A DNA stretch of 64,000 nucleotides, taken from positions 159,911 to 223,910 of the forward strand of contig JAKMXF010000340.1 in assembly GCA_024704765.1 (NCBI GenBank). The letters are read 5' to 3'. A program made the translations under genes and the position numbers. The notes under the pieces were generated by a model. That model did not search any database. It saw only the letters and a list, made by a program, of their open reading frames with translations, and was not told where the DNA came from. This document shows positions 9,701 through 31,036 of the stretch, one piece after another. The stretch is from Oopsacas minuta (Eukaryota; Animalia; Porifera). How positions within the stretch are numbered: position 1 is the first letter of the stretch; each line of letters starts with the position of its first letter.

Positions 9701-12700
9701 GTCCCAAACATTCAAAGTTACCATATATTCTATCGGTTATATAGAACTCGGCATATATCGAAGAAATTATCGTGGTCCCTTGAGCTTCGATATCACAGGA
9801 GTTGACTGTTAAGAATATGGTGCACAGAAAAAATTGAAATCCAAATAAATAGTATGCGCCAAAACGTGGATTATAATGCATATAGTTAAATAAGCTATAT
9901 ATAGATATCATATATCAGTGGTTTATGATATAGGAGTACTATACAGACTATGGAAATGTTATGGCACAGCTAACACAGTGTAATCTTTCAGAATATGATT
10001 TAACCCTTTTTCAAAAGGGTATTGTATTCATGGTTATCTGCGTGTGCCCACCAAATCATATATATTAATGTATTACAAGTGCGGCTATAGTACGCCTCTT
10101 GTTACAGGTATAATTAAGCAAATGAAACGAACCAATGAGGGCTGCGTCTCGAGCCCAATAGCCCGTCAAATCTTCATAACATTCTGCCCCAAAAAATTAA
10201 CCTTGAATGAAGTTCAAGTTCTTCTTAAAATAAATGAAGTTATGATTTTTAAATAATAACAAAATTACTAATAATACATGCGAATAAATAGCATACCAAT
10301 TAAAAAGCTTGTAAATTAGCCTCAACTTTCATATCCACTACATATATAGATCCAGCATAATTAACAGCTATGCCTTGTGGTTCAAATAAATCTCCAGGAT
10401 TTTCTTTACCCTTCCTCCCTACAACCTGTACCAAATCCCCTTGTGGACTGAATACACGTATTTGATGGGAGCCTGAATCAGATATCAGAATATTACTACT
10501 GGCATCCAAACAAAAGTATTTCGCATCTAAAACCATTGTCTCAGTCACGATATGACGGATTAACACTCCTTCATGCGTGAAGCTTTGTAATGGAAATTGA
10601 GATTTATGGAATAGAACGTAGATCGCTGTTGCCTCCACACGGATATCCCTTGTTTGTGTGTCACTGTTATTCGTCGCTTTTAACGTGAATTTTCTTTTGA
10701 ATTTCAAATTTGAAATACGCACTACAACTATTTGTAAGTTCAAAAGGTCACAAACGTAAAGGTATTTGTTGCCTTTCGAATCAATTCCGCTCAGTGAAAA
10801 TTCGAATTCAGTTTTCCCAATAATTTCTCCAGTGTATTTATTGATTTTGTTCAATTGGTGTAGGCCGCTGGTAATGAAGAGAAATTGGCCACTAATACAG
10901 ATCCTACGGGGTAGTAGTACCTTCTTCTGGCAAAAAGTTTCGAGAAAAATACCGTTTTCATCATAAACTTGAATTCGGTCGTTAAGGCAGTCTGCAATGT
11001 AAAGATTTTGTGTTTCATTATCGACAGCAATACCTTTCGCGTGGTTCAGATCTTCAGGACCATTTCCGCGTTTCGATTGATGCCAGTTAGGTTTCATTTT
11101 AAAGAATTTCCCTGGCGACTTGACTTCGATTATATGACAAATATTCTGTAATGAATCTTGGAAAGAAAGTTCATCCCAATGCACAATTAAGTCAGGCACA
11201 TCAACTGTGAAATTTTGGTATGCTTTTTTCTCAGTTTCAAGTGTGGAAATTATCTTTGCATATGCAGGTTTTAAATCAGATTGATTTAAACTATCGAAAA
11301 CGGTATTTTTAGCGATTTCAAGCTCGTTTATATTAATAATCCGATCGGCGAAAAGTTTCTCATAATGCTCATAAATAATATCAAGATCGCGAAATTTTTC
11401 CATTTCACTCAGGGATAAAAGATGGTGTAATTTCTCATATTTTTTCTTCAATTCCAGTTTGACAATTTCTATTTTCTCCCTCAAATCATCAAGATATTTA
11501 TTTTCGATTGGAATATTAAGCAAGCTAGGTAGTCCTGATGCTGGTAACGAATTTCTATTCTTATCTACCTGAAGGAGATTCGGCATACTTTGGCACGAAA
11601 GAGAATGAGATAATTCACACGAAGGCGCTATTTCAAACAAACAGGATCTTTCCGCAGAAGTTATCTTGTCTATCGACATATCAACTGGATTTCCTGTAAA
11701 TTGAAACTGTTTTTCACTTTCAGCAAAAGTTGGCGAATCCAATTGTATCAAATTTTCCTCTTTAACAAGTGTTTTCACCCTTTCATATTCAACATGTACT
11801 CGCTCCCATCCAACATGCTTTTCAGCATCACAAGCACAATAATCACATTGAAAGTATTGAAATTCATTCTTTGACGAATAACCATGACAGTGCCCACATT
11901 TACAAAGGCCTAAAGTCACAACTTTCACATGACACTTTCTATTATGTGCACAACATTGACAAGTATCATCCTCTGCCTGTTGTTCATATTCTTCACATTC
12001 TCCACATGCAACGCATCTACCACGTTTCGTTCCTTGTGCGTCTTTCCCCATTTATTTGATCAAAATTTATAAAGTTTTCGAAATTTATAGCCAGCAAAAA
12101 TGAAGATAAAAACAGATGGAATATACTGGTAGCAAACGTAGAGACAAATAAAATGAAGAGTATTAAGCGTATTTGAGAGCCTACCATCAAAGAAGTACAC
12201 AATATCATATGACAAACAAATAGTAGGCTATTCTACCAACTAGTAATCAAAGCATTCGGATTTTTAAATATTGCAATATCTTCTGGTATATTATAAATGG
12301 TTTATGCTCCATGGCGGAGATTTGTAGTACTTGACCTACCTATTCCATATATTACCATTACCCCTATGCGATAGTTTCATTTTGTAGGCTATAAAATGGC
12401 GAGAACCGTACAAATTCACCGTATATTATTTCTGTATTAATTCAATGGCTGAAGAATCCACTAAGCTAAATAAACAAGAATTGGACATACTACGCGATAA
12501 TATTCAAAATGCGAAAGATGAAGTTCGAGGAAAATTTGAAGATATTCACAGACGTTTAGAAACATTAGAAAGCGAAATAAACCACGAATTGGATGTTATA
12601 TTCGATCACTATGAAAGATTAATAATTCGACGTTCGCGGAATATAAGTCAACTCGACATCGCGAGAAGTAGATTATACTCAAGTCTGCAACACAACGATC

Positions 12701-15700
12701 TAAATGAGGCACTGGATAAACTATTAAAAGCGGTTGATTCTGAGAAAAAAACGTTTGTTGAAGAAGTAATTGATGTACCAAACGTTCTCGTTACTTGGGA
12801 CGAAATTTACTTGGAAGAAACTCTACAGAAACTTTGCAAAATAAACGAACTCAAATATTCAAAGGAATTTTTGAAGACAACATCATTATGGCATCAATCG
12901 AAACGTGGAAACGGGGAGGACGATTTGAACTATCCAAGAGGGATAGCATACGATGTGAAAGCACATAATCTCTACGTAGCTGATTGTCTAAACGATCGCA
13001 TCCAGGTTTATGATGAAAAAGGGAATGTGATTGATTCGATATGTAAAAACACAGTGAAACTTCCACGTAGGATTTGTATTACAGAAAATTTCCTGTTTGT
13101 TACAAGTGATCTACACCAACTGAATAAGATTAATAAGAAAACAGGCGAAGTACTTGAAAAAGAAAAATTCCAATACTTGTTAAGCGGAATCGATTCATTT
13201 AGGGAGAAATATATATACGCGTGTGACCTAATGGATCTACAAATAATTGTAATGCGTATTTCAAACTTGAGTGTGAAGAGGAAATTCACGTTAAAAGCGA
13301 CGAAAAACAGTGACACACAAACAAGGGATATCCGTGTGGAGGCAACAGCGATCTACGTTCTATTCCATAAATCTCAATTTCCATTACAAAGCTTCACGCA
13401 TGAAGGAGTGTTAATCCGTCATATCGTGACTGAGACAATGGTTTTAGATGCGAAATACTTTTGTTTGGATGCAAGCAGTAATTTTTTTGATATCTGATTC
13501 AAGCTCCCATCAAATACGTGTATTCAGTCCACAAGGGAATTTGGTACAAGTTGTAGGGAGGAAGGGTAAAGAAAATCCTGGAGATTTATTTGAACCACAA
13601 GGCATAGCTGTTAATTATAACGATTCTAGCATATTTGTGGTGGATAGGAAAGTTGATAAAATTCTGCAAGCTTTTTAATAATTGTAATTTGTGGAACTTT
13701 TTGTATAATGAATAAGGTATTTTGTACATTATTAAATCATTAAAGTATTTGACAATTTTTGGGATCAGAGTTTCGACAATCATAAGCAGAGGCATCGCGT
13801 GGATTGTAGTGAATAATTCTAAGTTGGGATTTACAACTCACAAGTGATCTACGTCGTCAAATGATATGACATTATTGTATTTGACTCAGAAAGTTCAAAT
13901 ACAGTAAAACCTTCAGTTAGTGAAGACCAGAGGAACCAGCCAAAATGTTCATATACGAGAAGTGTTCACTTTCTTGACATTGTGTTTAGCAATTGAAGAC
14001 ATTTGGGACCGAGAAAAGGTGTACATCTTTTGGAGATGTTCACTCCTTAGAGGTGTACACTTTTAGAAGTTTTACTGTATTTCTTATAGCAGGAGTAAGT
14101 GGCGCTCCTGAAATTATAGTATTCTTTAAAATATTCAAATAAACTACAGATAGAGCAGGGGGTCATTTAACAACATTCTTTGAGGCAATTTTTAACCTCA
14201 TAACGAGACATTTCCCGACATAATACAGTAGACTCCGGTTAATTGGGAAAACAGCTGAATCTGGACAGTTACTCACTATAGCTTCTCAGGTATTCTATGG
14301 CCAAATCCGATCATTTATAGACAAAAGAATTCCAGCATCTTGTTCATATTATACAAAATTTCAGAAAAATGGTAAGGAATTTGTTCATATCATTGGCAGT
14401 AAGTGTTTTGCATCAAAAGCATTCTATTATCTTATAGAATGTCAGGAAATTATTCAAATACATTCAAAACCTGCAAGACTTTCAAAATATACCTAAATTA
14501 GTGAATATTGTACATTCATGTAATAAAGTAGACGTTAATTAGTAATTGCAAATATTTGTCGGTTTGATTCAAGTTGATTTTTACCAATCCGCCTACGAAA
14601 ATGAAAGTTTTGTCATATTGCAATTGTTCCAATGATAGTGAAACATATCGCATAATATTACATGACATCCGCTTAACCGAACCGCGAGGTGAGATTCCAA
14701 AATAGCATTAGATTTTGCTTAAGTCAACGGTCGGTAAATGAAAACTTGTTCAATATATCGAATGTACGAGAAAGGATCCATACGAGATTCCGAATAGTAT
14801 TTCCATACATATACATAATGTAATACGTATAATGTTGCCAGTTCAAGAACATGATATATGGATTATGGATTTGGCTTTTGTAAGAACTCTTGACTTTACA
14901 TTAATTTTAGCTTTTGGCAAGAACTTGGCATGAACATGACACGAACTTTGTGAACACATCATCTAGCAAGACCAACCAAGTAGCAACACTGAATAATCAA
15001 TAATCATAGCGGAAGTTACCTCCAAAGACTAGCAAATCAAGAAATATTCAAAGGTTCTAAGAATGCTTAATAAAATGTAACTTGTTCATTTGATAATGTA
15101 CACCTAAGGGCACATAAAAGTTACAAAACATCATGAAATTCGTTTGAAATATAATTTGTAATCAACAGAGCTATGCTACGTGAGCCAAAATGATATTAGT
15201 AACATGTGTGATAACGCTTAAGTGTTCAGGAAATTATTTACAATCCCAAGTTAATCTTTACTAACCAACTGAGCTAAGAAATTAGGGAAACTGCAGACTT
15301 CTCAATTCCTTCGATTGAAATCTTAAAATCATAGCTAATTGGTACTAAAATTCCAATCACTCAGAAAAGTAGATAATCATATGAATTGCATATTTTGGAA
15401 AAATTAAAATGAATATTACTATTACATTACGGATGCTAAAACTCAAAATAGATTACTACTCAATTTTGTAATATACATTACAAATAGTATATCTTAGAAA
15501 AACCACAAATCAACTTCTGTGCGGTTAATATTACCAAATCAATTTTAGTAGACTTTTGGAACAATAATAATATTATCCTACAAATATCCATATTAGCAAA
15601 GAAAAGATAAAATTGAATTTTAAAATCTTGTTAGACATTTAAAATGTCAAAATCGAATTCTACGCCCCGCTTTACCCCTATTTAACAAGTGGAAGCTAAT

Positions 15701-18478
15701 CTCTAGGATAATTTGAAATGTTCACCAAAAGGTGTGAAAATATGATTAATCATATGATAAATTCAGTGTAATAAGTGTATATATATTTAATAGGATGTAC
15801 TGAATAGAATTACAATCTACATCAATACAAATACAAGATACAGTGCTAATTAAATTACATACAGGCAAGAACTTGGCATGAACCGTCAAAGGGTTTAAAA
15901 ATATACACATTAGAAATTTCCAAATGTCAGGTGTACAAACTAGATGTCATTACGAGTATACATGCCAAATTTGGTGTTTTCATCTATAAAGGTGTGAACA
16001 ACAGAGCCAAAATAGAAGCCCGAGAATACTCTTTTATCGTAATACTACTTAACTACATGAAAATCGGGAATTCCATCCATGGTGATATAACAGCCAAGGA
16101 AAATACTGTCAATGCTGGTTATAAGAACATCATCGGGAACTGGACATAATGTTCTTATAACCGGCATGTCGTATATAAGAACATGTTCTTATAACCGGTG
16201 TTCTTATATCCGGCATCTGCTGTATTCGATATTCCATTATGTTATAACAAAATATTGAAAAATTCATATTGTTTGAATATAAAATTAGAAAAGATTTCCT
16301 CTAAGCATGCATTATTACTTACAAACCTACGTAGTTATAGTGTAAATTGAGATATCCTTATGATAACTGTAGAAAATGGATTATTAATTATAGAAATGTG
16401 TAATCCAATGGTTGAGGAAATTCTCCGGAACTATAAATGATGATTCCATGTAGAGTTTATAATACAAGATTATAAATCAATTTTCATTATTCAATGATTC
16501 AGCAATAGGAAGTTCAAGTTACAATGCATAAATGTTCCTGGAATAAAGTACAGACGTAAAGGATGAGATAAGAAAATGGATAATTTCAAAATGGGTGTAT
16601 TAGAAACTGATTTGTCCTGAATAAACCCTGAAGTTTATTTTATTCTTGGTCAATTTGATCTATACATTTAGTGATATATCAAATGTTGTGCCCTCTTCCA
16701 GTTTCCTAGAAATCATAGCCATGGATGAAAAACAACCACATTAGTATCGTATACAGATACGTAAGTAAGTCAGTGGCGGTCCCAGGGTAGGGGAAACGGA
16801 GCATTTTCCCAGGATTTGAAAATCTTGGCCCCTGCCTTGCCCCGGGCTATGCAAAATCCTGGGACAGCCCCTGAAGTCGTAGCATCGTCACGTCAGGGAA
16901 TAATCTATAAAAGAGGCGGAATTATAAATTACTCTCAAGACAATGCACACTACAAATCCAATTATCAAACACGATAATTACTTTCATAAATTATTACTCT
17001 GCCCATTTGGTTCTATGAAATATTCAAATATTTACAAACAACTTCTACATTAATAAATTCATATATCAAAGCTTTCGATTGTATAACTTCTAACCGAATA
17101 TATTAGTACAGTAATGTTAGCACATAATCGTATTGACATAATAGCACTGAAATTTGACTAATAAGCTTGATACTATGCAGGGCCGTTGAGAGCGCGAGCG
17201 GACCCCCTCTGATATTTTGTTCCGTTATCGTGAAGTGAATAAACTAAACGCAAACCATCGCATTCGTATTATATATATATATATTAAAAGTTAAACAAAA
17301 AGGTTGTCAGCCTATTTACGCGTGCCTGTCGTTTGGATCGTATCCCGTAAACTGAGTTAGTTATTGAAAAAAATTATAATTGATACAAAGTAAGTCAGGA
17401 CTGGGTTTCTAAGAAGGATTAAATAACAAAGGTATTACTCTGTCCAGCGATGTCTTTATTTTCCCCTTTACTTGTCTACTTAATGCATGCAGCCAATAAA
17501 GCCCATACATACCTTCACAGACAGAATTTCTCGGGCCCTGGGGTAATTACCCCGCCGACTCCCCCCTCTCGACAGCCCTGATACTATGCATGTATGTATA
17601 ATATAGAAATTATAGTGGCGACATGTTGGCATATGTTTTTGAAATATGGGGAGGAGTACAGGTCCTATTTGAGGGTCTGGGAGTGCTTAGTACCAAATTG
17701 GACCATTGGACATATACTTTCTCCTGTATTATAGAATTTATCAAAAAATTTTAAACTTAGAAAATCAATCGAAACTGCATTAGAACATTCCTTACCAGAT
17801 CCAGACTCTCCAGTAGCAACAATACAATGATCATCACGTGTTTTAGTAACTAATTGATAAGCAGCATCAGCTATAGAGAACGGATGTGGAGCATTCTGGA
17901 ATAGCTCACTGCCCTTGTATGTCTCGATTACGTCATCACCGAATATCTTCATCTCCTATATAGAGAGATAAGCTATACGTAATTCACCGATCAATCGAGG
18001 TTAATATCACCAAAGTAATTAATGTTACTGTAGATGATTATTTGATATTGAACCATGGATGGTGAATTTAGTATACTATATGGTGTATCAAATGTCCCGT
18101 CGAATCAAGCGAGCAGTGGTTCAAAGTGACCATATTTAAAACGGAGTTTCCTATACATCAATCACGTTCTAGCTCTGACCGCATTTTGTCACGTGTTAAC
18201 GAAACTACTATTTATCGCGAGATTCCCCTAAAAATCATGACTTAATTCCTACTTCTCCCCAGACAGCTAAAAGTTAAATAGTTATAATTCTAATAATATC
18301 CTTCACAAACACATACCTCGTACGGATTTACAGCAATGAGAGACTCTCCAATATAAGAGTATATCTGTTCAGATTCATAACGCATCTTTAAGTTGAGTAT
18401 GAATGTGTCAAGTGTCAGGTTATCAACCTGAGTGAAGTCGGGTAACCCTTCTGGCATCTTTCGACGTCCTGCCTTCAT
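723..18478 (-). CDS. MYO1D: Unconventional class I myosin, myosin-Id/Ig-like; multi-exon, C-terminal tail continues beyond window start
   Basis: Exons (GT-AG, phase-consistent): 18317-18478, 17796-17955, 7631-7928, 6952-7177, 6489-6673, 5361-5614, 2703-2998, 2008-2318, 1220-1535, 723-899. Motifs: VNPYE, GESGSG|KTE, EAFGNARTKRNNNSSRF, LEKDRVV..RNFHIFY, RDTLAK, DIYGFE, YVRCIRPN, IQ-like IQTIWRK, and MRDLGYSIEWP resembling the Myo1d post-IQ segment. A possible further acceptor lies at position 8. Confidence 0.9.
1010..1204. mobile_element. Tc1/mariner-pogo-type MITE (CAGTCAACTCC TIR family)
   Basis: CAGCCAACACCCGCTATATC ... ATATAACGGAGTTGACTG followed by TA; same TIR as 9624-9808. Confidence 0.55.
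3690..4805 (+). CDS. Cation diffusion facilitator zinc transporter (SLC30A2/3/4/8-like), intronless, antisense inside a myosin intron
   Basis: 371-aa ORF with 6 TM segments: SSLAVLTDSAHMLSD (TM2 H..D), YGYHRAEVLGA, NIRAALIHCIGD (TM5 H..D), ADPICTFIFS, LHDLRIW, TIQVE, N-terminal CKCH and C-terminal CELC. Confidence 0.93.
   Translation: MEDVYMNREAGKLFSSNNYKLKYVTGSCQEIERIEHPKKNQNLCKCHSNDENWKSNKTREALIKLTIAAFLAIIFTIAEAVGGYISSSLAVLTDSAHMLSDFFGFIVSLVSLVISKRKPSRKMHYGYHRAEVLGAVFSVIIIWIVTALLVYEAIQRVIHLDYEIDADVMLITATAGLYINVLLSLVLQIPLPKFLLEKETFETRKTTPKVENINIRAALIHCIGDIVQSMGVIIAGIIIRFRPDLKIADPICTFIFSILVTITTLNILRDAVHILMEGAPGNIKVEEVKSFLLNIPGVKRLHDLRIWNVNSTRICLSVHLAVDFCGKYDALLERVINDLKERYNIDYTTIQVEYYNQEEYFNCELCTSQDK
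5853..6352 (+). pseudogene. Degraded ORF with a PHD-finger-like remnant, possibly the C-terminus of a decayed transposase
   Basis: An acidic short ORF is followed by ENID*VSCDKCGRWYHILC..GWFWEFC* with in-frame stops (TAG where W is expected). Confidence 0.45.
8457..9551 (-). CDS. Uncharacterised 364-aa protein: tandem Cys/His zinc-like module, helix, (G/S)Q(H/Y)PGMQ repeat, C-terminal Cys knuckle
   Basis: Intronless ATG-to-stop ORF. The N-terminal ~85 aa are clearly homologous to the N-terminus of 10300-12051. The C-terminus is CKGHGC...YDFCGKTCASK. Confidence 0.85.
   Translation of the reverse strand: MGKDKFGTKRGRCAICEECYEYSPPREGSSLACDYCDHKPIYHTEIVVLGACACNKCHGYNTSNDCQYTTCDYCDCAADKHIGYEKIQGEMDKVKQRIKDLKSGHIPGKIQEQTATPQPQVQPQDQQEYGLQSSSIQIQPTGTQDQHPGMQGQGQYAGMQSQHPGMQGQHPGMQGQHPGMQGQHPGMQGQHPGMQGQHPGMQSQYPGMQGQHPGMQSQYPGMQGQHPGMQSQYPGMQGQHPGMQSQYPGMQGQHPGMQSQYPGMQGQHPGMQGQYPGMPGQQLPGQCYNPMAANPQYYYQQSPYSYNQPLTGMPYGSPGAGGGRGGHTVDNDNKCKGHGCTRQKRKKEDGKGYYDFCGKTCASK
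8715..9119. repeat. Coding minisatellite, 21-bp unit, about 19 copies, with a 42-bp higher-order alternation
   Basis: Units such as GCATTCCGGGATGTTGACCTT and GCATTCCAGGATATTGACTTT; translated GQHPGMQ/SQYPGMQ. Confidence 0.95.
9624..9808. mobile_element. Tc1/mariner-pogo-type MITE
   Basis: TIRs CAGTCAACTCC / GGAGTTGACTG, TA on the left flank. Confidence 0.7.
10300..12051 (-). CDS. NHL-repeat (TRIM-NHL-like) protein with an N-terminal tandem Cys/His module and coiled coil
   Basis: 583-aa intronless ORF. NHL signatures: LNHAKGIAVD..LYIADCLNDRIQVYD, ILISDSGSHQIRVF, LFEPQGIAVN..IYVVD. A coiled-coil-like segment lies at about aa 190-290. Confidence 0.9.
   Translation of the reverse strand: MGKDAQGTKRGRCVACGECEEYEQQAEDDTCQCCAHNRKCHVKVVTLGLCKCGHCHGYSSKNEFQYFQCDYCACDAEKHVGWERVHVEYERVKTLVKEENLIQLDSPTFAESEKQFQFTGNPVDMSIDKITSAERSCLFEIAPSCELSHSLSCQSMPNLLQVDKNRNSLPASGLPSLLNIPIENKYLDDLREKIEIVKLELKKKYEKLHHLLSLSEMEKFRDLDIIYEHYEKLFADRIININELEIAKNTVFDSLNQSDLKPAYAKIISTLETEKKAYQNFTVDVPDLIVHWDELSFQDSLQNICHIIEVKSPGKFFKMKPNWHQSKRGNGPEDLNHAKGIAVDNETQNLYIADCLNDRIQVYDENGIFLETFCQKKVLLPRRICISGQFLFITSGLHQLNKINKYTGEIIGKTEFEFSLSGIDSKGNKYLYVCDLLNLQIVVVRISNLKFKRKFTLKATNNSDTQTRDIRVEATAIYVLFHKSQFPLQSFTHEGVLIRHIVTETMVLDAKYFCLDASSNILISDSGSHQIRVFSPQGDLVQVVGRKGKENPGDLFEPQGIAVNYAGSIYVVDMKVEANLQAF
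12445..13678 (+). CDS. Coiled-coil plus NHL-repeat protein, paralog of 10300-12051; +1 frameshift at the T7 run 13482-13488 (pseudogene or sequence error)
   Basis: ORFs 12445-13497 and 13448-13678 together align with the paralog through to ...LQAF*. The paralog has 6 nt (TATTCT) where this copy has 7 T. Confidence 0.8.
16106..16222. mobile_element. Small TA-flanked MITE
   Basis: Imperfect TIR CTGTCAATGCTGGTTATAAGAAC / GTTCTTATATCCGGCATCTGCTG, TA on both sides, internal GTTCTTATAACCGG repeats. Confidence 0.55.
16771..16873. mobile_element. Short hAT-like MITE
   Basis: TIR CAGTGGCGGTCCCAGG / CCTGGGACAGCCCCTG; second copy at 635-715. Confidence 0.6.
17178..17580. mobile_element. Non-autonomous hAT element with a perfect 8-bp target-site duplication
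   Basis: TIR CAGGGCCGTTGAGAG / CTCTCGACAGCCCTG; ATACTATG at 17170-17177 and 17581-17588. Confidence 0.85.
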
Positions 18479-19678: not shown

Positions 19679-21715
19679 TACGTAGCAAGTATAGTGTAAA
19701 TAATATCCGCACAATTATTTTACCATCCCTATTAGATTTAAAATTCCTTAATGATCTACAATTTTACAATAAAATGAGAATAAGAAAACATCCACACTAG
19801 AATAATAGAGCGATAATATTCAATTATACGTACATAGATATGATAGGGAATTTTTAATATAAAACAATGTATTTTTATGAGAACTTAATTGAATAATTGT
19901 ATAAATCAAGACTATTATCAAGTAATAGAAACAAAAGGATACTTATACACTAATTGAATAATATGACTTAACAGGGCCGACGGAGCCAGTACGGCCTGTC
20001 CAATTTTTAAATCCTCCAATAGATTTAGTTGTTGAAACAAAACCGTATTAAATCCTTGTTTCCGCCGTTCCTGCATAAGATTTTAGGAGAATGTGTTATT
20101 ATAAAATACGAGACTTTTAATTTAAAATTTGGCTAAAATTAGATATGATGGAATTCAAGACATTTGAGGTTACAATAATGATTGGAAGGATATATAGGAC
20201 ATTTCTACAGCTTCTATGAGGTGAGTGGGCTAAAGAAGTAGAATTCACAGGTAATGTTTTCTATGTGTCCAATTCTCTCTAATTGTCCCAGAGATGCCAA
20301 CTCTCACGCTTTTCAGGGGTAAAAAAAGTGAAAGCTCACGCCATTTTATGATTTACATTTTGATACTGAAATGCCAAATTTCATTCATTTTGAGAAGAAA
20401 TCTCACTGCTTTGCGAGACGCCAGGTTGAGCATCTACGCAAAAAAGTATGAGACTCCCATCATATGCAGTACAGATTCTTGTATGCAAAAGTTGCATACA
20501 ATAAAAGTTGGCCAGCGTCTATATTGAATTTTCCATGTAACATAACTGCATGAAATTTTGGTTTTTGGAATTTGTAGGCAATTTTGTGCATGCAAGAATA
20601 CTACACCATGTTGTATGTATAGTGAGATTTGCATTCAACATGTTACATAGAATAAAACAGTTCAATTTTTCTGCAACATTTTGAACGAAATTATATTTTC
20701 ATGCAACATTGTTGTATCTTGTTTGTTGGCTTGTTGCAATACATTGTTTACGCTGGGTTCAGTCCCGCATGTTATCATAAATATTCGGGCTAAGAAGTCC
20801 ACAATAAATTGAATTTTTCTTATTTTGTTTGAATAACTGTTTCAATGAAGTATCAATACTCAATTAGAAATCGTTGGAGCAATCAATTCTTGGAATAAAA
20901 CATTTTATTGTACTCATTGTGTGTGAATGACCATTCATTCTATGTTATTATTGTAAAAAACTTTGATGGTGAACTTTAATTGAGAAATAATTATGGGTTG
21001 AATACAACCTATATTCTCCAATTATGAATAAATTTAGAATTTCAACAGATTTACCAAAATATCGATTCCAAATCCAATTTCAATTTTCTCGCTAAAAACC
21101 AGATAATTGAAGCATTCATAGTCTTCAACTATAAAAATAGAAATATTTTGTTAAATAATATTTCTGAATAAACGAACGAAAATCATGAAAAATACGCGAA
21201 ATACAGCCAACCTTTTCGAAAATTTTCAAATTTTCTCATAATCAGAATTTTGTATATTCCTAAATTAATTTCTAAAATGGAATAGAAATTCAGAGATTCT
21301 TCGTTTTGAAACGAAGAATATCTGAATTTGAATAAATTGTGCCAAAATGAATACCAAAATTCGAATGTTCCTTCATTTCGAAAGTCGTTCGTTCGTTCAG
21401 CCCTAATATTACTTGAATAACAATTTGCATATGCACTAAGCTAAAAATATTCAAAAACTTTCGAGCTATTAAAATGTCAATCCTCATACAGGATCAAGTA
21501 GAATTTAAATAATATATCCGCATGAGAAACTTTTGCAAATAAAACATTCCCAAACATGGATGTTTGTAAATAAATACCCAGATCCTATACCCGAGTAGTT
21601 AATTATTTTGCATCCGGCTTCACCATTTTTGCATGCGGAGACCATTTTAATATATGTGACTTTCAGTGTATTTGCAATAAATATTTTGTTTATATATTCA
21701 GATCTATCTGTGACG

Positions 21716-23898
21716 ATGAGACTAGCCCTAGGCCTTGTGCTAGCATTAGCATTAATCGGTAAGCAAAATTTACACATACACTTTCCAAATAAATATTTAT
21801 AATTACATATGATAGCCCAACTAAATGGCGCCCAGCTTGACAAATATGACTATGATGTCATGTATGATGACCAAGAGGAATTTGATGACAAAAATTGGTT
21901 TGACAACCAAGGTAAGAAAATTTGTTAACAATATTACAGTTGTTCAAAATTTCCGCATATAATACACAAATTACTGGATATTTACATACCCATTACACGA
22001 AGTTGTGAAAATATCCGGTTTCAGCAGTATATTGAGATATACAAATACATTTCCATTTTTTGTTAAACACTGAAATATATGTAGAAGATGACATGGTTAA
22101 ACTCCCTCAAGGTGGAGATGAACAAATGAAAGCTCCAACTGAGGAGGATATCATGATGTCCTCTCCTCAAAAGGATGAGACTCTTCCAGAATCAAAGACT
22201 GTGAATAATGGAGAGACCTTTGAAGAATTGCTAGCAGGTAACGAGGGATATGTGTAAAATCTCCGATACGTTATTTAGAAAAATTACCCGATATGATAAA
22301 CTCGGTTCGATATTACTAAAATATGAAAATATTCAAAAATTCGGAAAATATGGATAAAATTTTGGTAAAATACAGAAATTTATGAAACTTTCGGGAACAA
22401 TTATCGTATTTCCATGTTTTGAATTTCGATATTTTGATATCACGTATATCGATAATTGGGGTATATGCCTGATATTTTTGATAGTTTTCGATCTTTTTGG
22501 AATGTAAGATATTTTAGAAATTTTCTTTTCGGATATATTCGTACTATACATTGCAGGTAAACTAATCAGTAAACTCTATCATACTTAACAACCCCTTGTA
22601 ACTGTTTCCGTGGATATTTTCCTCGAAATCCCTCGATTTTCAAACTTTCTCTGGAATTCTATTTTTCTATGCTAATTATACGAGTTTTTCCCTAATTTTA
22701 AACGATATATTTGTATTATTGTACAATACTTTTCCTATAGCAAAATCATCTTTACTTGGAGAACCTGTTGATGGTTAGTGTACATAAGTATTTGAGATAA
22801 ATCTGTCCAATGTTTATCTTAATTTTGTATTTTTAGAGGATACTATCGATATGAACATCTTCCCAAGAGAAGATGAGGTGGACAAATCGATGTTTCTGAG
22901 CGAGAAAGGTAAGTCATTTATTGTTGCCTAAAAAGTAATTTATCTAAAATGAGAGTTACATGGGACCATATAGCACATCCAATTTAGGTGCTTATAATTG
23001 AAGCATAGGGAAAAATACAAATTGAAAAGTAGTTACCGTATTTTCCTGAGTAAGCCACGAGGATAGAAAAAGATGTGGATAAAATGTATAGCCACCCTCT
23101 AGAAGAACACTTGTTGAAATTTCCGCCACATTTGACCATTCAACAAATTAGTTGCCCAAAATCTTTGTATTTCAAAAATTGAAAAGGCGAAAATGCCCAC
23201 GAAAATAATACTGTAATTATATTTCAATCACTTCTGTTGGACCAATTAAGATAAAGGAGAGTTGAAATCGAGAAAGTTTCGAGTCGGGTTCTGAAATGTG
23301 AACGATTCCAACTGATACAAAAGCTCTGCTTAATAGAATAATCAGTGGCCGCGTAATCGGATTTAAATGCCCTGGTCTCAAAGTGACCCATCAATCGGAG
23401 TCAATAGTAATAATTCAACATGCACTCTATTATTTGATTCTATTGTGTTTAGAAATGAATTTGACTGGATCCAGATGCTCAATGCCCATCCATTATCCCA
23501 ATAGAGGTGGAAAACGTGCTGTCCCTGGAACCCGATGGGTCGCTGTTAAATCTCATAAATGGCTTTATGCAACTATTTGTCGTACTTGCTATGGTGATAT
23601 CCCAGGCTTCTACTGGGGAGGTTATTGCTACTTTGAATATAATCGCCGGCTGTATCGTACATGTACTTGGGACTGGACTGGACTTATTTACGGCAAAACT
23701 TATCTGTATTCTAGATGTCACAGAAGTCGTTGTACCATCTTTGGTGGATACCAAAAGAATTACAAAAACCCATGGTTCCTTTGTGTAGCCAGGCACGGAG
23801 GTTGGCTAGTACCAGGAAAAGGTGACGTATATACTAGGTTATGCTGGTATTTAAAGGGTCGGCATTCCAGGAACTTCTATTGGCTTGTTGCCCATTAA
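21716..23898 (+). CDS. Secreted precursor (280 aa): signal peptide, acidic pro-region, GKR site, cationic Cys/Trp/Tyr-rich DM9/DUF3421-like domain
   Basis: Exons 21716-21758, 21816-21911, 22085-22237, 22741-22773, 22837-22908, 23453-23898; all GT-AG and phase 1, total 843 nt. The sequence begins MRLALGLVLALALIAQLNG. Two repeat-like halves contain IPG..YCYF and GG..VPGK..LCWY. Confidence 0.8.
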
Positions 23899-24440
23899 AT
23901 ACTGCTCAACAAATCAATAGCGCTCTTCAAATTACTACTAATATCTGCTGTGTAGGCCGTAGTAATCTATTCCAGTATTTCAGTATTGTATCTTAGGCAT
24001 TATTACTAACAATTAATAATTATCTTTGTTGTTGGTTAAAGTATATCGAAATTAATATTTCTCTCTATCAGTTTGTTTGTCAGTTAATATACACAATGGG
24101 AAAGTTGGGAGTATCTTTGGATGAGATTACATTTATTCTAATTTACTAATGATTAACAACTAAAGTCAACATACACTAGGCAAGTATGTTGCATCATGTG
24201 TATGGTGAGATTTCCATAATTGCATAGCAATAGAAAATGTCCTATTTGATCATTTTCCTGCAATGTTGCATGAAATTATACTTTTCATAACATTGTGTAT
24301 AGTGAACTTTAGGTTTTCAACGGCTAATCAGTGTCCATTAGGTAGAACTTTGGCCATTAGGGGTATAAATATGTTTAATTCCCATATATATATAACAAAA
24401 ATTGGAAAATGTGGGGGAAATGTATAGTAAACTAACAAAC

Positions 24441-26650
24441 TCAGAATATTGATAATTGCTTGACTGTAATTTGAAGAGTTATGTTGTGCTCTCTATAATA
24501 TTTCTCTTCTAATATTCCAGTGTTTGAAATGAATGTACGAGTTCCAAAACCTCCATTCCTCAGCTTAGCAGGTCTCTTGAAACTATTTGGATATTTATCC
24601 AAATCTTTCTTAGTAACTTCATCGGAATAAACAAAATTATCTTCATTATTAATCTGATTGAGAAGAACAAACGTCCATTTGTATTTGATAGGCCAGTGTA
24701 ACATATGATCATAATTCCCCTTCATAATTAGAATGAAACAACCTACTTTACCTGTGTTAGCAAAATCCCATACAATACGCCCCTGACACTTGTATAGGCC
24801 TACATAGAATGGATCACTGTAACTTGTTTCTTTGCGAAGTATTTTCATTTTAACATTTCCAATCTTCCATTCAAACTCTCCTATAGAAACTTTTGTAGAT
24901 AGTTCTTGATTTTGTTCTTCTAGAGTTGATATTCTTTCAGTCGCTTTAGCTAATTGAGAAATTGCTGTATCCAATTTGTCTTGCATATCTATCATTGATA
25001 ACCTGAAGTGAATGTGTAAGGATTCTTTCTCGTGATGTTTCAACTCTCTTCTTTCCATCTCCTCTCTACATCCATTATTCCAATAAATACACTGTATTAT
25101 CTGTAGAGGACACTCGTTTGATAAATGAGCAGGAATATCTCTCCTCTTCATCCCTTCCTTTCCATTTGTACCGCATCCATTAGGACATGGAACTGGAAAG
25201 TCCTCACAGACCTCTAGATGAGGATTCATCCAACAAGCCTCCACTTTATCGTTACAGAATTCACAAATGATTTTTCTCAATGGACACGAGTCTATCTGAT
25301 GTTCTAGAATATGTCTCCTCTCTATTTTAACAACTTTCCCCTTCCTCTCTCCTTCTAGAACCGCACACCCCAGCGGGCATACAACAGAAAGGAACTTACA
25401 TTCATCTAGATGGTGTAGTACTGTTTTAACTGTGTAACTCCAATCGCATCCACTCCCTTTTAGAGGGCAACGAATCTATGAATAATAATGTTGTAAATAG
25501 GTTCAAACATAACTTCAATTATCTCAAAACGATGTTTTTCGCCACAGCACTAATTTTCATAGAAGTATGAATAGTCCTTAAGCTCTGAAAATTTATGGGA
25601 AGTATTTATACAATGTTTTGCCTGATATCTAGACCACATTTGGAATGAATGAACGAATATTTCTCATGATATCACACCCTAAGCCCTGCGGACTCCGGTT
25701 TTTAGCCTATTTTTGCCGGACCCCACATCAAACGTTAATACCTTCTTATTGGGGAGGTACTCGGGCCTAATTGTGGTCTAGAAAATTAGAACTACATATT
25801 GTTAGCATATATAGCAATTTATAGGTCTTAGGCAATAGTCCTTCTTCAAAAAACAATTGGGTATATGGCCCGAACTTCAATGTTATGTCTATGGGAGGAC
25901 TTTTGCCCCCTTTTCATGCCCAATTCGTAATACACAATAGATACATCAGGGTTTATGATTATTATCTCTTAGTTTGGCCCTTGCAACGAGCTGGAAAACA
26001 TTAAACATGTAGAATGGCATATACTTTAGAAAAAAGCATTCTTAAGTTGAAAAATGGTCATGAATCGTGGAAGTATACAAAAGAGTATGTAGCACACAAA
26101 TTATTCGTATCTGCACAGCGCAAACCAAATAACATGCACTATGTCCAAAAATTTCATATTCTCACAATATTGAAAAGATTTTCTTGAAAGTGAAAACTCA
26201 TTTAGGTGCTACCCACATAATATTTCCCAAAAATTGTAGAATAATTCATTCAGGCATCATGAATTATGAATATTTGATATATCGAATATTCGAATAAATC
26301 ATTATTTCCTAAATAGGTCAATTAAGGAACAAACAACAGTTATACGTCGTAACCATTGACAATTAAATTACCATTTTCTCGTTGACAATTTCACGATTGA
26401 CTTTAACAGGTTGCCATGGTGCACCTCTAGGAATGCAAATTCTACATTTGAATTCTTCTTGACAAATACAAGCTTCTCTCAATAAACCTTTACAAAAAGT
26501 ACACATCAATAATTTCTCTTCTACCCTGCTGGATAACTTCTCCTTCAACAATTCTAATCTCCAGCCTCTATAGCTATCATCTTCTGTCTTCACGTAGACT
26601 AAGTCCTCTTTCCAGAATCTCTCTTCTGTGTCCTCCAACTCTTCTGCCAT
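24441..26650 (-). CDS. TRAF-like protein, copy 1 (degenerate RING-like, TRAF zinc fingers, coiled coil, MATH), 437 aa
   Basis: Exons 26372-26650 and 24441-25475 (phase 0). Motifs: CEFC..HLEVC..VPCPNGC, CPLQIIQCIYWNNGC, MATH FEWKI..SDPFY..GNYDHMLHWP. Confidence 0.88.
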
Positions 26651-27166: not shown

Positions 27167-27986
27167 CTTTGTTAGTTTACTATATATTTCCAAGTTCCAA
27201 CTGTTATTTATTGTTATTATATTTTCATTGGAATTAAACATATTTTACCGCTTTTGACCTAAGTTCTGCCTAAAGAACACTGATTATCCATCGAAAACCT
27301 ACACAATGCAATGGAAATATATTTTCATGCAGCATTGCAGGAAATGATCAAGTAAAACAAGCTCTATTGCCATACAAATATGAAAATCTCACCATACACA
27401 GTACGATGCAATTTGATTGCACGCAACAACTGCAACATATTTTGTAGCTTTAGTCATTAATCATTAGTGAATTTGAATAAATTGAATCTCATACAAAGAT
27501 AATCCCAACTTTCCCATTGTCTAAACTGACAAACAAACCGTAATTGTTGGTAACATGATCTAGCCTAAGATACAATACTGGAATAGAATTTATCATAAAT
27601 AATACGACCTAAACAGCAGATATTAGTAGTAATTTGAAGAGCGATATTGATTGTTTGACCATCGCAGTATTCAACGGGAAATAACCAAACCTTTCCATAC
27701 CAACATAAACCTCTATATACGTCAGATATTAGACTTCCATAAACAAATATCAGATTTCCTGACTTGCATGCTAATAGAGCATGCTCTATTTGATCATTTC
27801 TTGCAATGTTGTGCATGAAATTATACTTTCATACCACCGTGTATAGTGAACTTTATGTTTTCTACGGCTAATCAGTACCCATTAGATAGAATTTTGGCCA
27901 CGAGCGGGATAAATATGTTTAATTCCCATATATATATATAACAAAAATTGGAAATCAAGGTGGAAATGTATAGTAAACCAACAAAC

Positions 27987-29510
27987 TCAGAATATTGATA
28001 ATTGCGTGACTGAAATTTGAAGAGTTGTGTTGTGTTCTTTACAATATTTCTCTTCTAGTATTTCAGTGTTTGAAATGAATGTTTGAGTTCCAAAACATCT
28101 ATTCCCCAGGTCAACAGGTCTCTGGAAACACTCTGGATATTCAGCCAAATCATTCTTAGTAACTTCATTGGAATAAATAAAATTATCTTCATTATTAATC
28201 TGATTGAGAAGAACAAACGTCCATTTGTATTTGATTGGCCAGTGTAGCATATGATCATAATGCCCTTTCATAATATTAATGAAACAACCTACTTTACCTG
28301 CGTTATCATGATTCCATACAATACACCCCTGACACTTGTATAAACCTACATAGAATGGATCACTGTAACTTTCTTCTTGGCTAAGTATTTTCATTTTAAC
28401 ATTTCCAATCTTCCATTCTAACTCTCCTTTGGAAATTTCTGTGGATAGTTCTTGATTTTGTTCTTCTAGAATTGATATTCTTTCAGTCGCTTTAGTTAAT
28501 TGAGAAATTGCTGTATCCAATTTGTCTTGCATATCTATCATTGATAACCTGAAGTGAATGTGTAAGGATTCTTTCTCATGATGTTTCAACTCTCTCCTTT
28601 CCATCTCCTCTCTACATCCATTATTCCAATAAATACACTGTATTATCTGTAGAGGACACTCGTTTGATAAATGAGCAGGAATATCTCTCCTCCTCATCCC
28701 TTCCTTTCCATTTGTAACGCATCCATTAGGACATAGAACTGGAAAGTCCTCACAGACCTCTAGATGAGGATTCATCAGACAAGCCTCCACTTTATTGTCA
28801 CAGAATTCACAAATGAGTTTCCTCAAGGGACATGAGCTTATCATATGTTCTGAAATATGTCTCCTCTCTATCTTAACAACTTCCCCCTTCCTCTTTCCTT
28901 CTAGAACCGCACACCCCAGCGGACATACAACAGGGAAGAATTCACAGTCCTCTAGGTGGTGTAGTACTGTACTAACTGTGTTGCTCCAATCGCATCCATT
29001 CACTTTTAGAGGGCAACAAATCTATAGATAAATATAGTGAAACCAGGTAACACGGACTGCGGAGTAAAAACATGTAGAACGAATTTCTAGTCCCATACAA
29101 ATGAACATCTTACAAACTGAGAATTTGCTCGAAACTGGAAAAACGGCCATTTTCGGCGTTCCGTATGTGGAAGTTACATAGATGATATATTTGTAAATAC
29201 ATACGACAGAAAGTAACAACAAATATATTACCATTTTCTCGTTGACAATTTCACGATTGACTTTAACAGGTTGCCATGGTACACCTTCAGGAGTGCAAAC
29301 TCTACATTTGAATTCTTCTTGACAAATACAAGCTTCTCTCAATAAACCTTTACAAAAAGTACACATCAATAATTTCTCTTCTATCCTGCTGGATAGCTTC
29401 TCTATCAACAAATCTAATCTCCAGCCTCTATAGCTATCATCTTCTGCCCTCACGTAGACTAAGTCCTCTTTCCAGAATCTCCCTTCTGTGTCCTCCAACT
29501 TTTCTGCCAT
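27987..29510 (-). CDS. TRAF-like protein, copy 2, 437 aa
   Basis: Exons 29232-29510 and 27987-29021, the same lengths as in copy 1; highly similar protein. Confidence 0.88.
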
Positions 29511-30193
29511 ACTACTATACAAAGTAATAGTATAGAAAGTATTGATGTAGTCTGCTAACAGGTCAATAATCCATTATGGGTTATTTTTATTCAATTATAT
29601 AGATTCAACTAGCGAGAATAATACTAACCATTTAATTTTTGGTAATAATGCCTAATATACAATAATGAAATAGAATTTTATCATATAATATTACTGCCTA
29701 AACACCAAATATTAGTAGTAATTTGAAGAGCGATATTTATTGTTTGACTATCGCATTATTCAACGGGAAATAACCCAATAGAATGTCTTGGTACACCAAT
29801 CCTTACCATGCCAACATAAACTTCTATATACGTCAGCATCACCTGGAATTAGCCATTTTCCATGCTTTGCAGCACATAAGAAGAGGGGGTTCTTGTATCC
29901 CTTTTCACTTACCTATGATTTGCTCGATATTTAATTTCCTAATTTTATTACAGAAAACATAGAACAAACATTAAACATCATAATGTCAGACTTTGATACC
30001 ATATAACTAAGCATTTGTCTAATCTATATTCAGATTGTATTACAGATAAAGCAAGCACAATGTTAAGAAGCAATTCATAATTAAGCCATAATTTGGCTTC
30101 AAACATTAAACAAATTCATGTATAATCCAAAGAATTTCATATGGTTTAACTGATGATTTGTGTTCTAACATGTGTTGAACTTTACAAAAATAA

Positions 30194-31036
30194 CGAAATT
30201 ATATAAATAAACGTAATAATATCACAAAATATCCAAAAACATGTATTTATACCCAAGTCACTTTAGCGAAGAATATAATCGCAGTTTTCTTAATTGTTGC
30301 AAATTGTTTTTCGGTTATTTTCGCGATTGTCACCATCTCTATATCAGTCACAGCAATAAGTTCCCTTCAAGTCATACAAGATTTAGATGGACGTTTGTAT
30401 TACCTAACAAACGCGATCGGGTTAATAGCTTTCTGCGGTGTACTTTGGCTGATTTCTTCATGGATAGGAACATTCGCCGCTTGCGCAACATTCTATAGTT
30501 CAAGAGATATCTGTAAGCAGACTGCCTATGGGTCACACACTGTATTTTTGTTTCTAATGATAATTTTGGTTGTATTTGAATTCATAGGGGCTATGGTAGT
30601 ATTCAGTATACGTGATGATTTGGTGGATAATTTTGAAGATGTCTACCTCGAGATGTTACAAAATGGATTATCAACACAAACGGAGGATTATAAATACGAA
30701 TTAGCATTGGATCGTTTACAAACATATTTTACTTGCTGTGGCTATAATGGTCCTGAAGATTATTCGACTACAGAATTTGGTGCTTATGGGCGATTAGTCA
30801 AAAGTTGTTGTGCTTTTACTCAAAGCAGTTTTGACCAATGCTATCAGATTGGCCCTGGGGTAATTAACTACGGTTGTAAATCAAAGATTGAAGATTTGAT
30901 CACTAAACATTATACAGAAATTGGTACTGTAGGGATATGTTTTGGTTTTGTTGAACTATTATCGATAACTTTAAGCTGTTTGTTGATGTTTTTCATATAT
31001 AAGGAAGATGCTGGCTGTGTCTATACGAAATGTTGA
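30194..31036 (+). CDS. Tetraspanin; start codon not identified
   Basis: Large extracellular loop with CCG, CC and further Cys (FTCCGYNGPEDY..KSCC..GC). Four TM segments if the open frame upstream of 30395 (NIIAVFLIVANCFSVIFAIVTISISV) is included. No in-frame ATG between the stop at 30191 and TM1. Confidence 0.85.
   Translation, partial: RNYINKRNNITKYPKTCIYTQVTLAKNIIAVFLIVANCFSVIFAIVTISISVTAISSLQVIQDLDGRLYYLTNAIGLIAFCGVLWLISSWIGTFAACATFYSSRDICKQTAYGSHTVFLFLMIILVVFEFIGAMVVFSIRDDLVDNFEDVYLEMLQNGLSTQTEDYKYELALDRLQTYFTCCGYNGPEDYSTTEFGAYGRLVKSCCAFTQSSFDQCYQIGPGVINYGCKSKIEDLITKHYTEIGTVGICFGFVELLSITLSCLLMFFIYKEDAGCVYTKC

Follow-up and report, generated by a model that had tools for sequence, protein, structure and literature searches.

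A spliced Oopsacas minuta gene for a divergent, probably secreted protein with a DM9-type fold

What is encoded by a sponge gene that joins a hydrophobic N-terminus, a long acidic stretch and a strongly cationic, Cys-rich domain? The question is raised by positions 21716-23898 (forward strand) of a 64,000-nt stretch of DNA from Oopsacas minuta (GenBank assembly GCA_024704765.1, contig JAKMXF010000340.1, positions 159,911 to 223,910), to which we refer as the window. A first-pass annotation of this stretch, made from the letters alone, had suggested a secreted precursor from which a DM9-like domain is released by cleavage at a Gly-Lys-Arg (GKR) site. Molluscs and insects use proteins with DM9 domains as lectins for pattern recognition, and natterins contain such domains as toxin modules. 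According to the best overall explanation, to which we assign a probability of about 0.6, the product of the gene is a divergent DM9 protein that is secreted and probably carries N-glycans and disulfide bonds; it would act in extracellular recognition or defence and bind a ligand other than mannose. It is an uncharacterised member of a known fold, hence only moderately surprising; full-text literature searches, one for DM9 together with sponge and one for the locus name LOD99_8709, yielded no account of any DM9 protein from sponges.

We propose that the chain would start with a signal peptide, and that the acidic stretch after it is disordered and for the most part confined to Oopsacas. A short acidic/hydrophobic segment (residues ~100-133, with an invariant FPR) would then pack onto an aromatic/basic face of the DM9 domain, and the covered face would include, by motif register, the positions that bind mannose in the lectin CGL1 of Crassostrea gigas. 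The protein would work outside the cell, in binding or recognition at host-microbe interactions, with a ligand different from the mannose of CGL1. That this segment docks on the domain and that the protein serves in defence are our inferences from the data presented below.

The gene model comprises six exons (843 nt summed), with an ATG at 21716, a TAA at 23896-23898 and five introns, all of the GT-AG type and in phase 1. The exon-by-exon translation is identical to the database protein LOD99_8709 of Oopsacas minuta (280 aa, here P0001). Four sequencing runs of one study (X1-X4) were examined over window positions 21500-24200, and the exon joints listed below are those present in run X2.

21716-21758, forward strand: exon 1, start codon and hydrophobic signal-peptide-like N-terminus MRLALGLVLALALI; joint 21758/21816
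21816-21911, forward strand: exon 2, acidic, Tyr/Asp-rich part of the N-terminal region, joints on both sides; predicted local distance difference test score (pLDDT) <50 in the full-length model
22085-22237, forward strand: exon 3, acidic, predicted to be disordered; joint 21911/22085
22741-22773, forward strand: exon 4, 11 codons, first part of the segment that the models place against the DM9 domain; joints 22237/22741 and 22773/22837
22837-22908, forward strand: exon 5, conserved acidic/hydrophobic motif (IFPR-DE-D...F); joint 22908/23453
23453-23898, forward strand: exon 6, sequon NLT, conserved Cys141, variable leader, two divergent DM9 repeats and stop codon
23509-23517, forward strand: G-K-R codons (residues 152-154), the processing site proposed in the first-pass annotation
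23899-24040, forward strand: 3' untranslated region (UTR), end approximate; X2 depth is high through the 23957-24047 bin and 0 past it

The joints of X2 coincide with all five predicted introns, and its summed word-depth is 1e5-8e5 in the exons as compared to 30-90 in the introns (3,686 contigs on 2.7 kb). In the DNA-like runs X1, X3 and X4 coverage is even across the introns and joints are absent, which leaves no room for a processed DNA copy of the gene. Adapter ends are of the TruSeq type in X2 and Nextera in X3 and X4, and the Oopsacas genome study generated RNA-seq and DNA-seq data as well as Nextera mate pairs within a single BioProject (PMC10280926). X2 thus looks like RNA, on strong but indirect grounds (the type of this run is our deduction and not on record), and the gene would accordingly be transcribed and spliced as predicted. 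We have hardly any doubt about the six-exon model, and the earlier expectation that these exons are joined in transcripts was confirmed for five of the five introns.

Run X2 also revealed an alternative in-frame acceptor at 22112 (joint 21911/22112, alongside the main joint), whose use skips 22085-22111 and removes 9 aa (E47-Q55). Two haplotypes are both present in this run, with exonic differences at window positions 21720, 21730, 22097 and 23504; three of the four are non-synonymous (R2K, V51D and R150K), the last one situated two residues ahead of GKR.

The domain encoded by the last exon almost certainly adopts the DM9 fold, as judged from profile comparison and structural modeling, in agreement with the DM9-like character originally assigned to it. 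The hhalign comparison of the family profile (A2) with a profile of canonical DM9 units (A5) reported a probability of 98% (E-value 1.9e-13, 110 columns). The AlphaFold2 model of the domain, built from a family-only alignment without canonical DM9 sequences, is all-beta (pLDDT 78; predicted template modelling score, pTM, 0.75). A Foldseek search with this model returned CGL1 (5IDB, 5ID8), CgDM9CP-1 (5MH2, 5MH3) and MFP2 as the leading matches (probability 1.0; template modelling (TM) score: 0.54-0.65), after which the probability fell to 0.07. VIA-align against 48,161 chains likewise ranked CGL1 first (Z: 14.3; root mean square deviation: 3.0 A; 127 residues aligned), ahead of MFP2 (Z: 10.8) and of the next, unrelated fold (Z: 3.5), and a structure search with the ESM Atlas model of P0001 matched DM9 clusters (TM score: 0.69-0.70). 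The domain had also been described as having two halves that resemble DM9 repeats: both indeed align to DM9 repeats by profile (hhalign), but BLAST of one half against the other detected no internal repeat.

At the level of single sequences the relationship is much more remote. A phmmer search of 1.84 billion representatives matched 13 proteins, of which seven had E-values <1e-10, namely P0001 itself and six predictions from ENA or Logan (P0002-P0007). Multi-repeat proteins of the DM9 type (P0009, P0011 and P0013) followed at library-wide E-values of 1.4e-6 to 4.5e-4; Pfam labels the first two as DM9 (1.6e-22 and 9.7e-20, respectively), and the third bears the same repeat motifs. In a word search P0001 found itself alone. 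The Pfam DM9 model PF11901 (gathering score 26.2 bits) is matched weakly by 15 of the 17 family members (E-values up to 0.1), and only P0007 exceeds the cut-off (26.9 bits). As fold and homology are supported, yet P0001 fails the Pfam threshold, we regard the family as a very divergent DM9 subfamily. Searches of the PDB gave a chance-level fragment of a C-type lectin with the P0001 sequence, weak matches to beta-propellers (E-value ~0.03) with the family profile, and nothing in a phmmer search with a canonical DM9 segment, so CGL1 appears not to be alignable by sequence. A PF11901 search of the Oopsacas genome gave no match anywhere, but it was uninformative, as the controls remained silent too. 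The family alignment exhibits six conserved Cys residues (C141, C175, C191, C226, C243 and C263), PG in both repeats, K255 and D257.

The succession of a putative signal peptide, an acidic part and a cationic domain, as foreseen in the first-pass annotation, is supported by composition counts, with the signal peptide judged by inspection. The signal-peptide candidate is a 13-residue hydrophobic stretch after Met-Arg, and similar stretches are found by inspection in the first exons of relatives. Residues 21-133 (113 aa) contain 35 D/E and 10 K/R (net charge -25; isoelectric point, pI, 4.05), and residues 155-280 contain 19 K/R, 4 D/E and 8 Cys; the latter counts had been given correctly and the segregation of charge is real, although this second part is 126 rather than 128 aa long. 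The whole domain of the last exon has a net charge of +19, pI of 9.85, 9 Cys, 9 Trp and 16 Tyr. The region of ~115 aa described earlier as acidic is so, but it is mostly a lineage-specific expansion, with only a motif of ~22 aa kept in relatives; in the full-length model, residues 21-87 have pLDDT <50, as compared to 86 for residues 111-120. An N-glycosylation sequon (NLT, NAT, NVT, NLS or NES) is kept in every member that covers the position, and its conservation together with that of the Cys residues fits passage through the secretory pathway. The Oopsacas protein would therefore be expected to be secreted, N-glycosylated and disulfide-bonded.

CGL1 contacts mannose in site A through Asp22, Lys43 and Glu59, and in site B through Lys114 and Glu130 (PMC4932603); its mutants D22A and K43A lose binding (PMC5712788). 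The mutagenic primers given in the latter work identify K43 as the Lys of PGK and place E59 after F55-A56-G (PMC5712788). The CGL1 register thus corresponds to the canonical PGK...C.Y.YGGxE, and we used this motif register, not a structural superposition, to map the CGL1 residues. In repeat 1 of the sponge family PGK is replaced by PG[F/Y] (K43 corresponds to F185), and the Glu of GGxE by Leu, Gln or Val (E59 corresponds to L199). In repeat 2 the Lys is kept (K114 corresponds to the nearly invariant K255), the position of E130 is a gap or Ser/Thr, and a family-specific invariant Asp257 is present; a conserved equivalent of Asp22 was not found in the family alignments. Since the mannose-binding residues are mostly replaced, lectin activity like that of CGL1 should not be assumed. 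The fold appears to be retained and the known sugar site largely lost, and lectin activity, if present, would necessarily differ in kind.

Outside the DM9 domain, conservation is strongest in FPR and the acidic residues that follow it. In four genomic loci of relatives (L004, L005, L006 and L008) an exon for [DE]F[DN].S[IV]FPR.[DE][DE].D.S.F lies ahead of each last exon, and a signal-peptide-like first exon is found further upstream in L004, L006 and L008, with a marginal match only in L005. The signal, motif and domain exons of L006 all lie within ~1 kb, and this compact layout suggests that the long acidic exons 2-3 are an Oopsacas expansion of a short ancestral motif. When residues 100-133 and 134-280 of P0001 were modeled as a complex, the interface score ipSAE (interaction prediction score from aligned errors) was 0.68, 0.68 and 0.69, as compared to 0.00 for the best of three controls; the runs share at least 74% of their contacts, with pLDDT of the partner of at least 71. 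The ipSAE mark applied is reached by 51 of 78 solved complexes and by 2 of 108 mismatched pairs. The lowest-error contacts of the predicted complex bring F117-P118-R119-E120 against G249-P253 and F185, and the interface also takes in residues 198-202 and 266-267; by register, the contact positions correspond to K43, E59 and F126/A127 of CGL1. On a cautious reading of these models, residues 100-133 are part of the folded unit; on a bolder one, they may mask the ancestral ligand groove.

The bolder reading invites the idea of a zymogen-like activation, in which a trypsin-like protease would remove the acidic front after the invariant FPR (Arg119) or nearby and thereby unmask the binding face. 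The exceptional conservation of the FPR-acidic motif would suit such a scheme, as would its predicted position over the aromatic/basic face and the complementary charges of the two parts (-25 and +19). However, the motif is predicted to be so well packed (pLDDT 86) that a permanent structural element fits at least equally well; we consider activation at FPR unlikely.

The family is tiny in databases, and Oopsacas is the only named source in those searches that carry source names. The relative P0002 comes from a metagenome sample, in which a contig of 952 nt contains an uninterrupted open reading frame of 260 aa (L003:27-809) with the same layout of signal, acidic part (net charge -15) and DM9 domain. 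It is 42.5% identical to P0001 over the whole protein and 51% over the DM9 domain, which in P0002 contains 16 His and is only mildly basic; the contig probably represents a transcript or else a copy without introns. A further locus, on the 802-kb ENA contig ctg28051 (ERZ25069837), represents a related species and contains a tandem array of five copies within ~23 kb:

L012:9977-10402, L012:15545-15979, L011:1713-2135, L011:10001-10435 and L011:14516-14938: copies of the array

The array adjoins a myosin gene, with 94% and 83% identity between its first exons and those of the myosin gene in the window (18457-18305 and 17952-17794, respectively, reverse strand), and NHL/DUF5128 genes, which are 55-61% identical to window positions 10303-13618. 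As the myosin and NHL/DUF5128 neighbours are shared, the two loci are syntenic, and the array species is presumably another hexactinellid.

In the Oopsacas window the NHL/DUF5128 genes are nested in the myosin gene (10303-13618; 17794-18457, reverse strand), and their position by the DM9 genes is conserved. The DM9 genes of the other species are oppositely oriented relative to the myosin neighbours, which suggests an inversion.

Copies B-E of the array alternate between two exon types, between which the domain exon is ~20% divergent. The rate of nonsynonymous substitution between the types (dN 0.24-0.28) exceeds the synonymous rate (dS 0.11-0.13); across pairs, NG86 puts their ratio omega (dN/dS) at 2.0-2.3 and YN00 at 2.3-2.7. 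For the pair B/C all four methods give omega of 2.25-2.51 (Fisher test, p = 0.017; bootstrap 95% interval 1.22-4.18; P(omega <= 1) = 0.004). By comparison, the 550 nt of intron directly upstream are 96-99% identical in the array, and exon 5 is identical (100%). Within the domain exon the two types do not differ in the first 20 residues or in the PGKLDQDT stretch, and the differences cluster around the PG loop of repeat 1 and in the strands ahead of the PGK of repeat 2. The selection argument uses the L004/L011 array alone, as the maximum-likelihood estimate for the divergent pair c2/c3 of another array, L006, was unstable (dS 10.8). Omega above 1 in the array of this relative is consistent with a role in defence or recognition.

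Conserved prepro exons and introns combined with a fast-evolving exon for the mature domain are the pattern of venom and antimicrobial gene families. We speculate that the proteins could form a lineage-specific family of glass-sponge effectors, in which signal/pro exons and introns stay near-identical, a re-purposed DM9 exon diversifies under positive selection, and the FPR-acidic propiece acts as a removable autoinhibitory plug in the ancestral sugar groove; taken as a whole, this scenario is a long shot, of the same low order of likelihood as activation at FPR. If true, one of the animal lineages that branched off earliest would possess an immune or toxin effector system that can be activated.

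Several points weigh against the preferred explanation of a secreted, divergent DM9 protein acting in extracellular recognition. Pfam searches with the full P0001 sequence and with its last exon returned neither DM9 nor any other family, even at an E-value of 10; identity to CGL1 is only ~11%, and the equivalence to its site A depends on motif register, not on superposition. The calibration of the complex test extends neither to peptides nor to pairs of pieces from the same chain, and passing it may just mean that the domain boundary lies further towards the N-terminus. The dN/dS comparisons are not independent (they share branches and represent about three lineages) and concern a relative, not Oopsacas; the contrast between exon and introns could be inflated if the flanks underwent gene conversion, and in the second array (L006) omega is only ~1.2, with one method unstable. 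The strong cationic charge is no constant of the family, since the domains of relatives have pI of 5.1-9.4.

Some of the same data could be read in favor of a protein that belongs to the structure or matrix of the glass-sponge body (associated with silica, adhesive or part of the extracellular matrix) and takes no part in recognition. The spliced contigs are of very high word-depth confined to exons, the composition is rich in aromatic, His, Cys and basic residues with an acidic tail, the named and syntenic members are from glass sponges or glass-sponge-like sources, and MFP2, a relative with the same fold, is a structural/motility protein. However, the protein differs in size, termini and fold from hexaxilin, perisilin and glassin, which were extracted from hexactinellid silica (PMC10772126), and dN/dS above 1 between tandem copies would be unusual for a matrix protein, so that we judge a matrix role to be improbable, somewhat more so than activation at FPR. 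On the basis of how these three silica proteins are described in the literature, we rejected identity with any of them (PMC10772126).

Still lower in our estimation stands the processing scheme of the first-pass annotation, in which a convertase would cut after GKR (residue 154) and free a cationic antimicrobial DM9 domain, along with an amidated ...PNRG-NH2 peptide. The string quoted around the site, CSMPIHYPNRGGKRAVPG, was found as stated at residues 141-158. The motif G-K-R is present in it, in a loop of lower confidence (pLDDT ~66) ahead of the DM9 core, between predicted strands 142-148 and 163-165. Cleavage would be enzymatically possible, as the Oopsacas genome contains candidates for a convertase P-domain and a copper monooxygenase, plausibly the processing enzymes, and two relatives (P0002 and P0023) possess a single Arg at the aligned position. 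Nonetheless, GKR is unique to Oopsacas among the 17 aligned family members: none of the 16 relatives has a dibasic pair there, and the aligned positions include GSHR, GSHV, G-HC, QPKC, DDYV, QSKC, RHIH, YKLR and DTHI. A G[KR][KR] motif occurs in 34% of shuffles of the domain, and dibasic pairs are rarer in it than expected (2 observed, 3.4 expected). Moreover, the conserved sequon, the conserved Cys141 and the predicted strand 142-148 all lie upstream of GKR and would be separated from the domain by the cut, and the expressed allele R150K nearby is in keeping with a variable loop. Judging from the alignment, GKR is most likely an incidental dibasic pair in a variable loop and no conserved processing site; the convertase and amidation claim was thus not upheld.

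The least probable alternative, by a shade, is an ordinary mannose-specific DM9 lectin like CGL1/CgDM9CP-1, which the homologous fold and the PGK lysine kept in repeat 2 (K255) would favor, but which is contradicted by the replacement of the essential K43 by Phe/Tyr and of E59 by Leu, Gln or Val, the deletion of the repeat-2 Glu or its change to Ser/Thr, the lack of conservation of Asp22, and the presence of disulfide-type Cys, a putative signal peptide and an N-terminal extension, all lacking in the descriptions of CGL1.

The preferred explanation remains a secreted recognition or defence protein, belonging to a subfamily that departs from the described DM9 proteins in its presumed secretion, its richness in Cys, its conserved acidic prosegment and its loss of the canonical mannose residues, and further in the tandem array of a relative, where the domain exon evolves faster than the introns. 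Molecules at the host-microbe interface typically show such a combination. Were it confirmed, it would open a way into the innate defence of hexactinellids, about which little is known, and provide a case of an old lectin fold that has been re-tooled.

Oopsacas itself has one intact gene and one relic, which retains the following:

29632-29905, reverse strand: second-copy relic, limited to the second DM9 repeat and the 3' UTR; a stop codon directly precedes it

The relic is 53% identical to the gene at the amino-acid level over domain residues 100-146, and 72.6% identical at the nucleotide level over 274 nt. It is situated ~110-380 nt upstream of the start (29522) of a TRAF-like gene, one of two closely related genes of this kind (zf-TRAF and MATH; 24441-25280 and 27987-29522, both on the reverse strand) immediately downstream of the DM9 gene. 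The segment 23880-24439 resembles 27168-27688 in inverted orientation (69.6%), which points to a history of local duplication, and a tetraspanin gene is found at 30395-31036 (forward strand).

Among the known systems, CGL1/CgDM9CP-1 from Crassostrea gigas (5ID8, 5IDB, 5MH1-3) is the closest in structure, as it shares the two-repeat all-beta DM9 fold (127 of 142 residues aligned, Foldseek TM score: 0.59-0.65), PG in both repeats and PGK in repeat 2. The published accounts of CGL1 describe a protein without disulfides, whose 142-143 residues are filled by two DM9 repeats, and do not mention a signal peptide (PMC4932603, PMC5712788). The sponge protein, in contrast, adds a putative signal peptide, an acidic extension, a sequon and six conserved Cys, and does not conserve D22, K43 and E59 of site A or E130 of site B. 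MFP2, which functions in nematode sperm motility (2BJQ, 2BJR), adopts this fold as well (Z: 10.8; Foldseek probability: 1.0), but it is a cytoplasmic, cytoskeletal protein with two such domains and without the secretion signal, the Cys pattern and the acidic extension. Natterin-type toxins likewise carry a DM9-type domain in a secreted protein; in them, however, an aerolysin-like pore-forming domain follows, whereas the sponge protein ends at its DM9 domain and Pfam finds nothing more. With the defensin-, cathelicidin- and conotoxin-like families it shares the order of a putative signal peptide, an anionic segment and a cationic Cys-rich domain, and its relatives share with them near-identical signal/pro exons and introns beside a domain exon that differs by 20%, with dN above dS; unlike in those families, the sponge part is a folded lectin-type domain of ~145 aa, and there is no conserved dibasic site.

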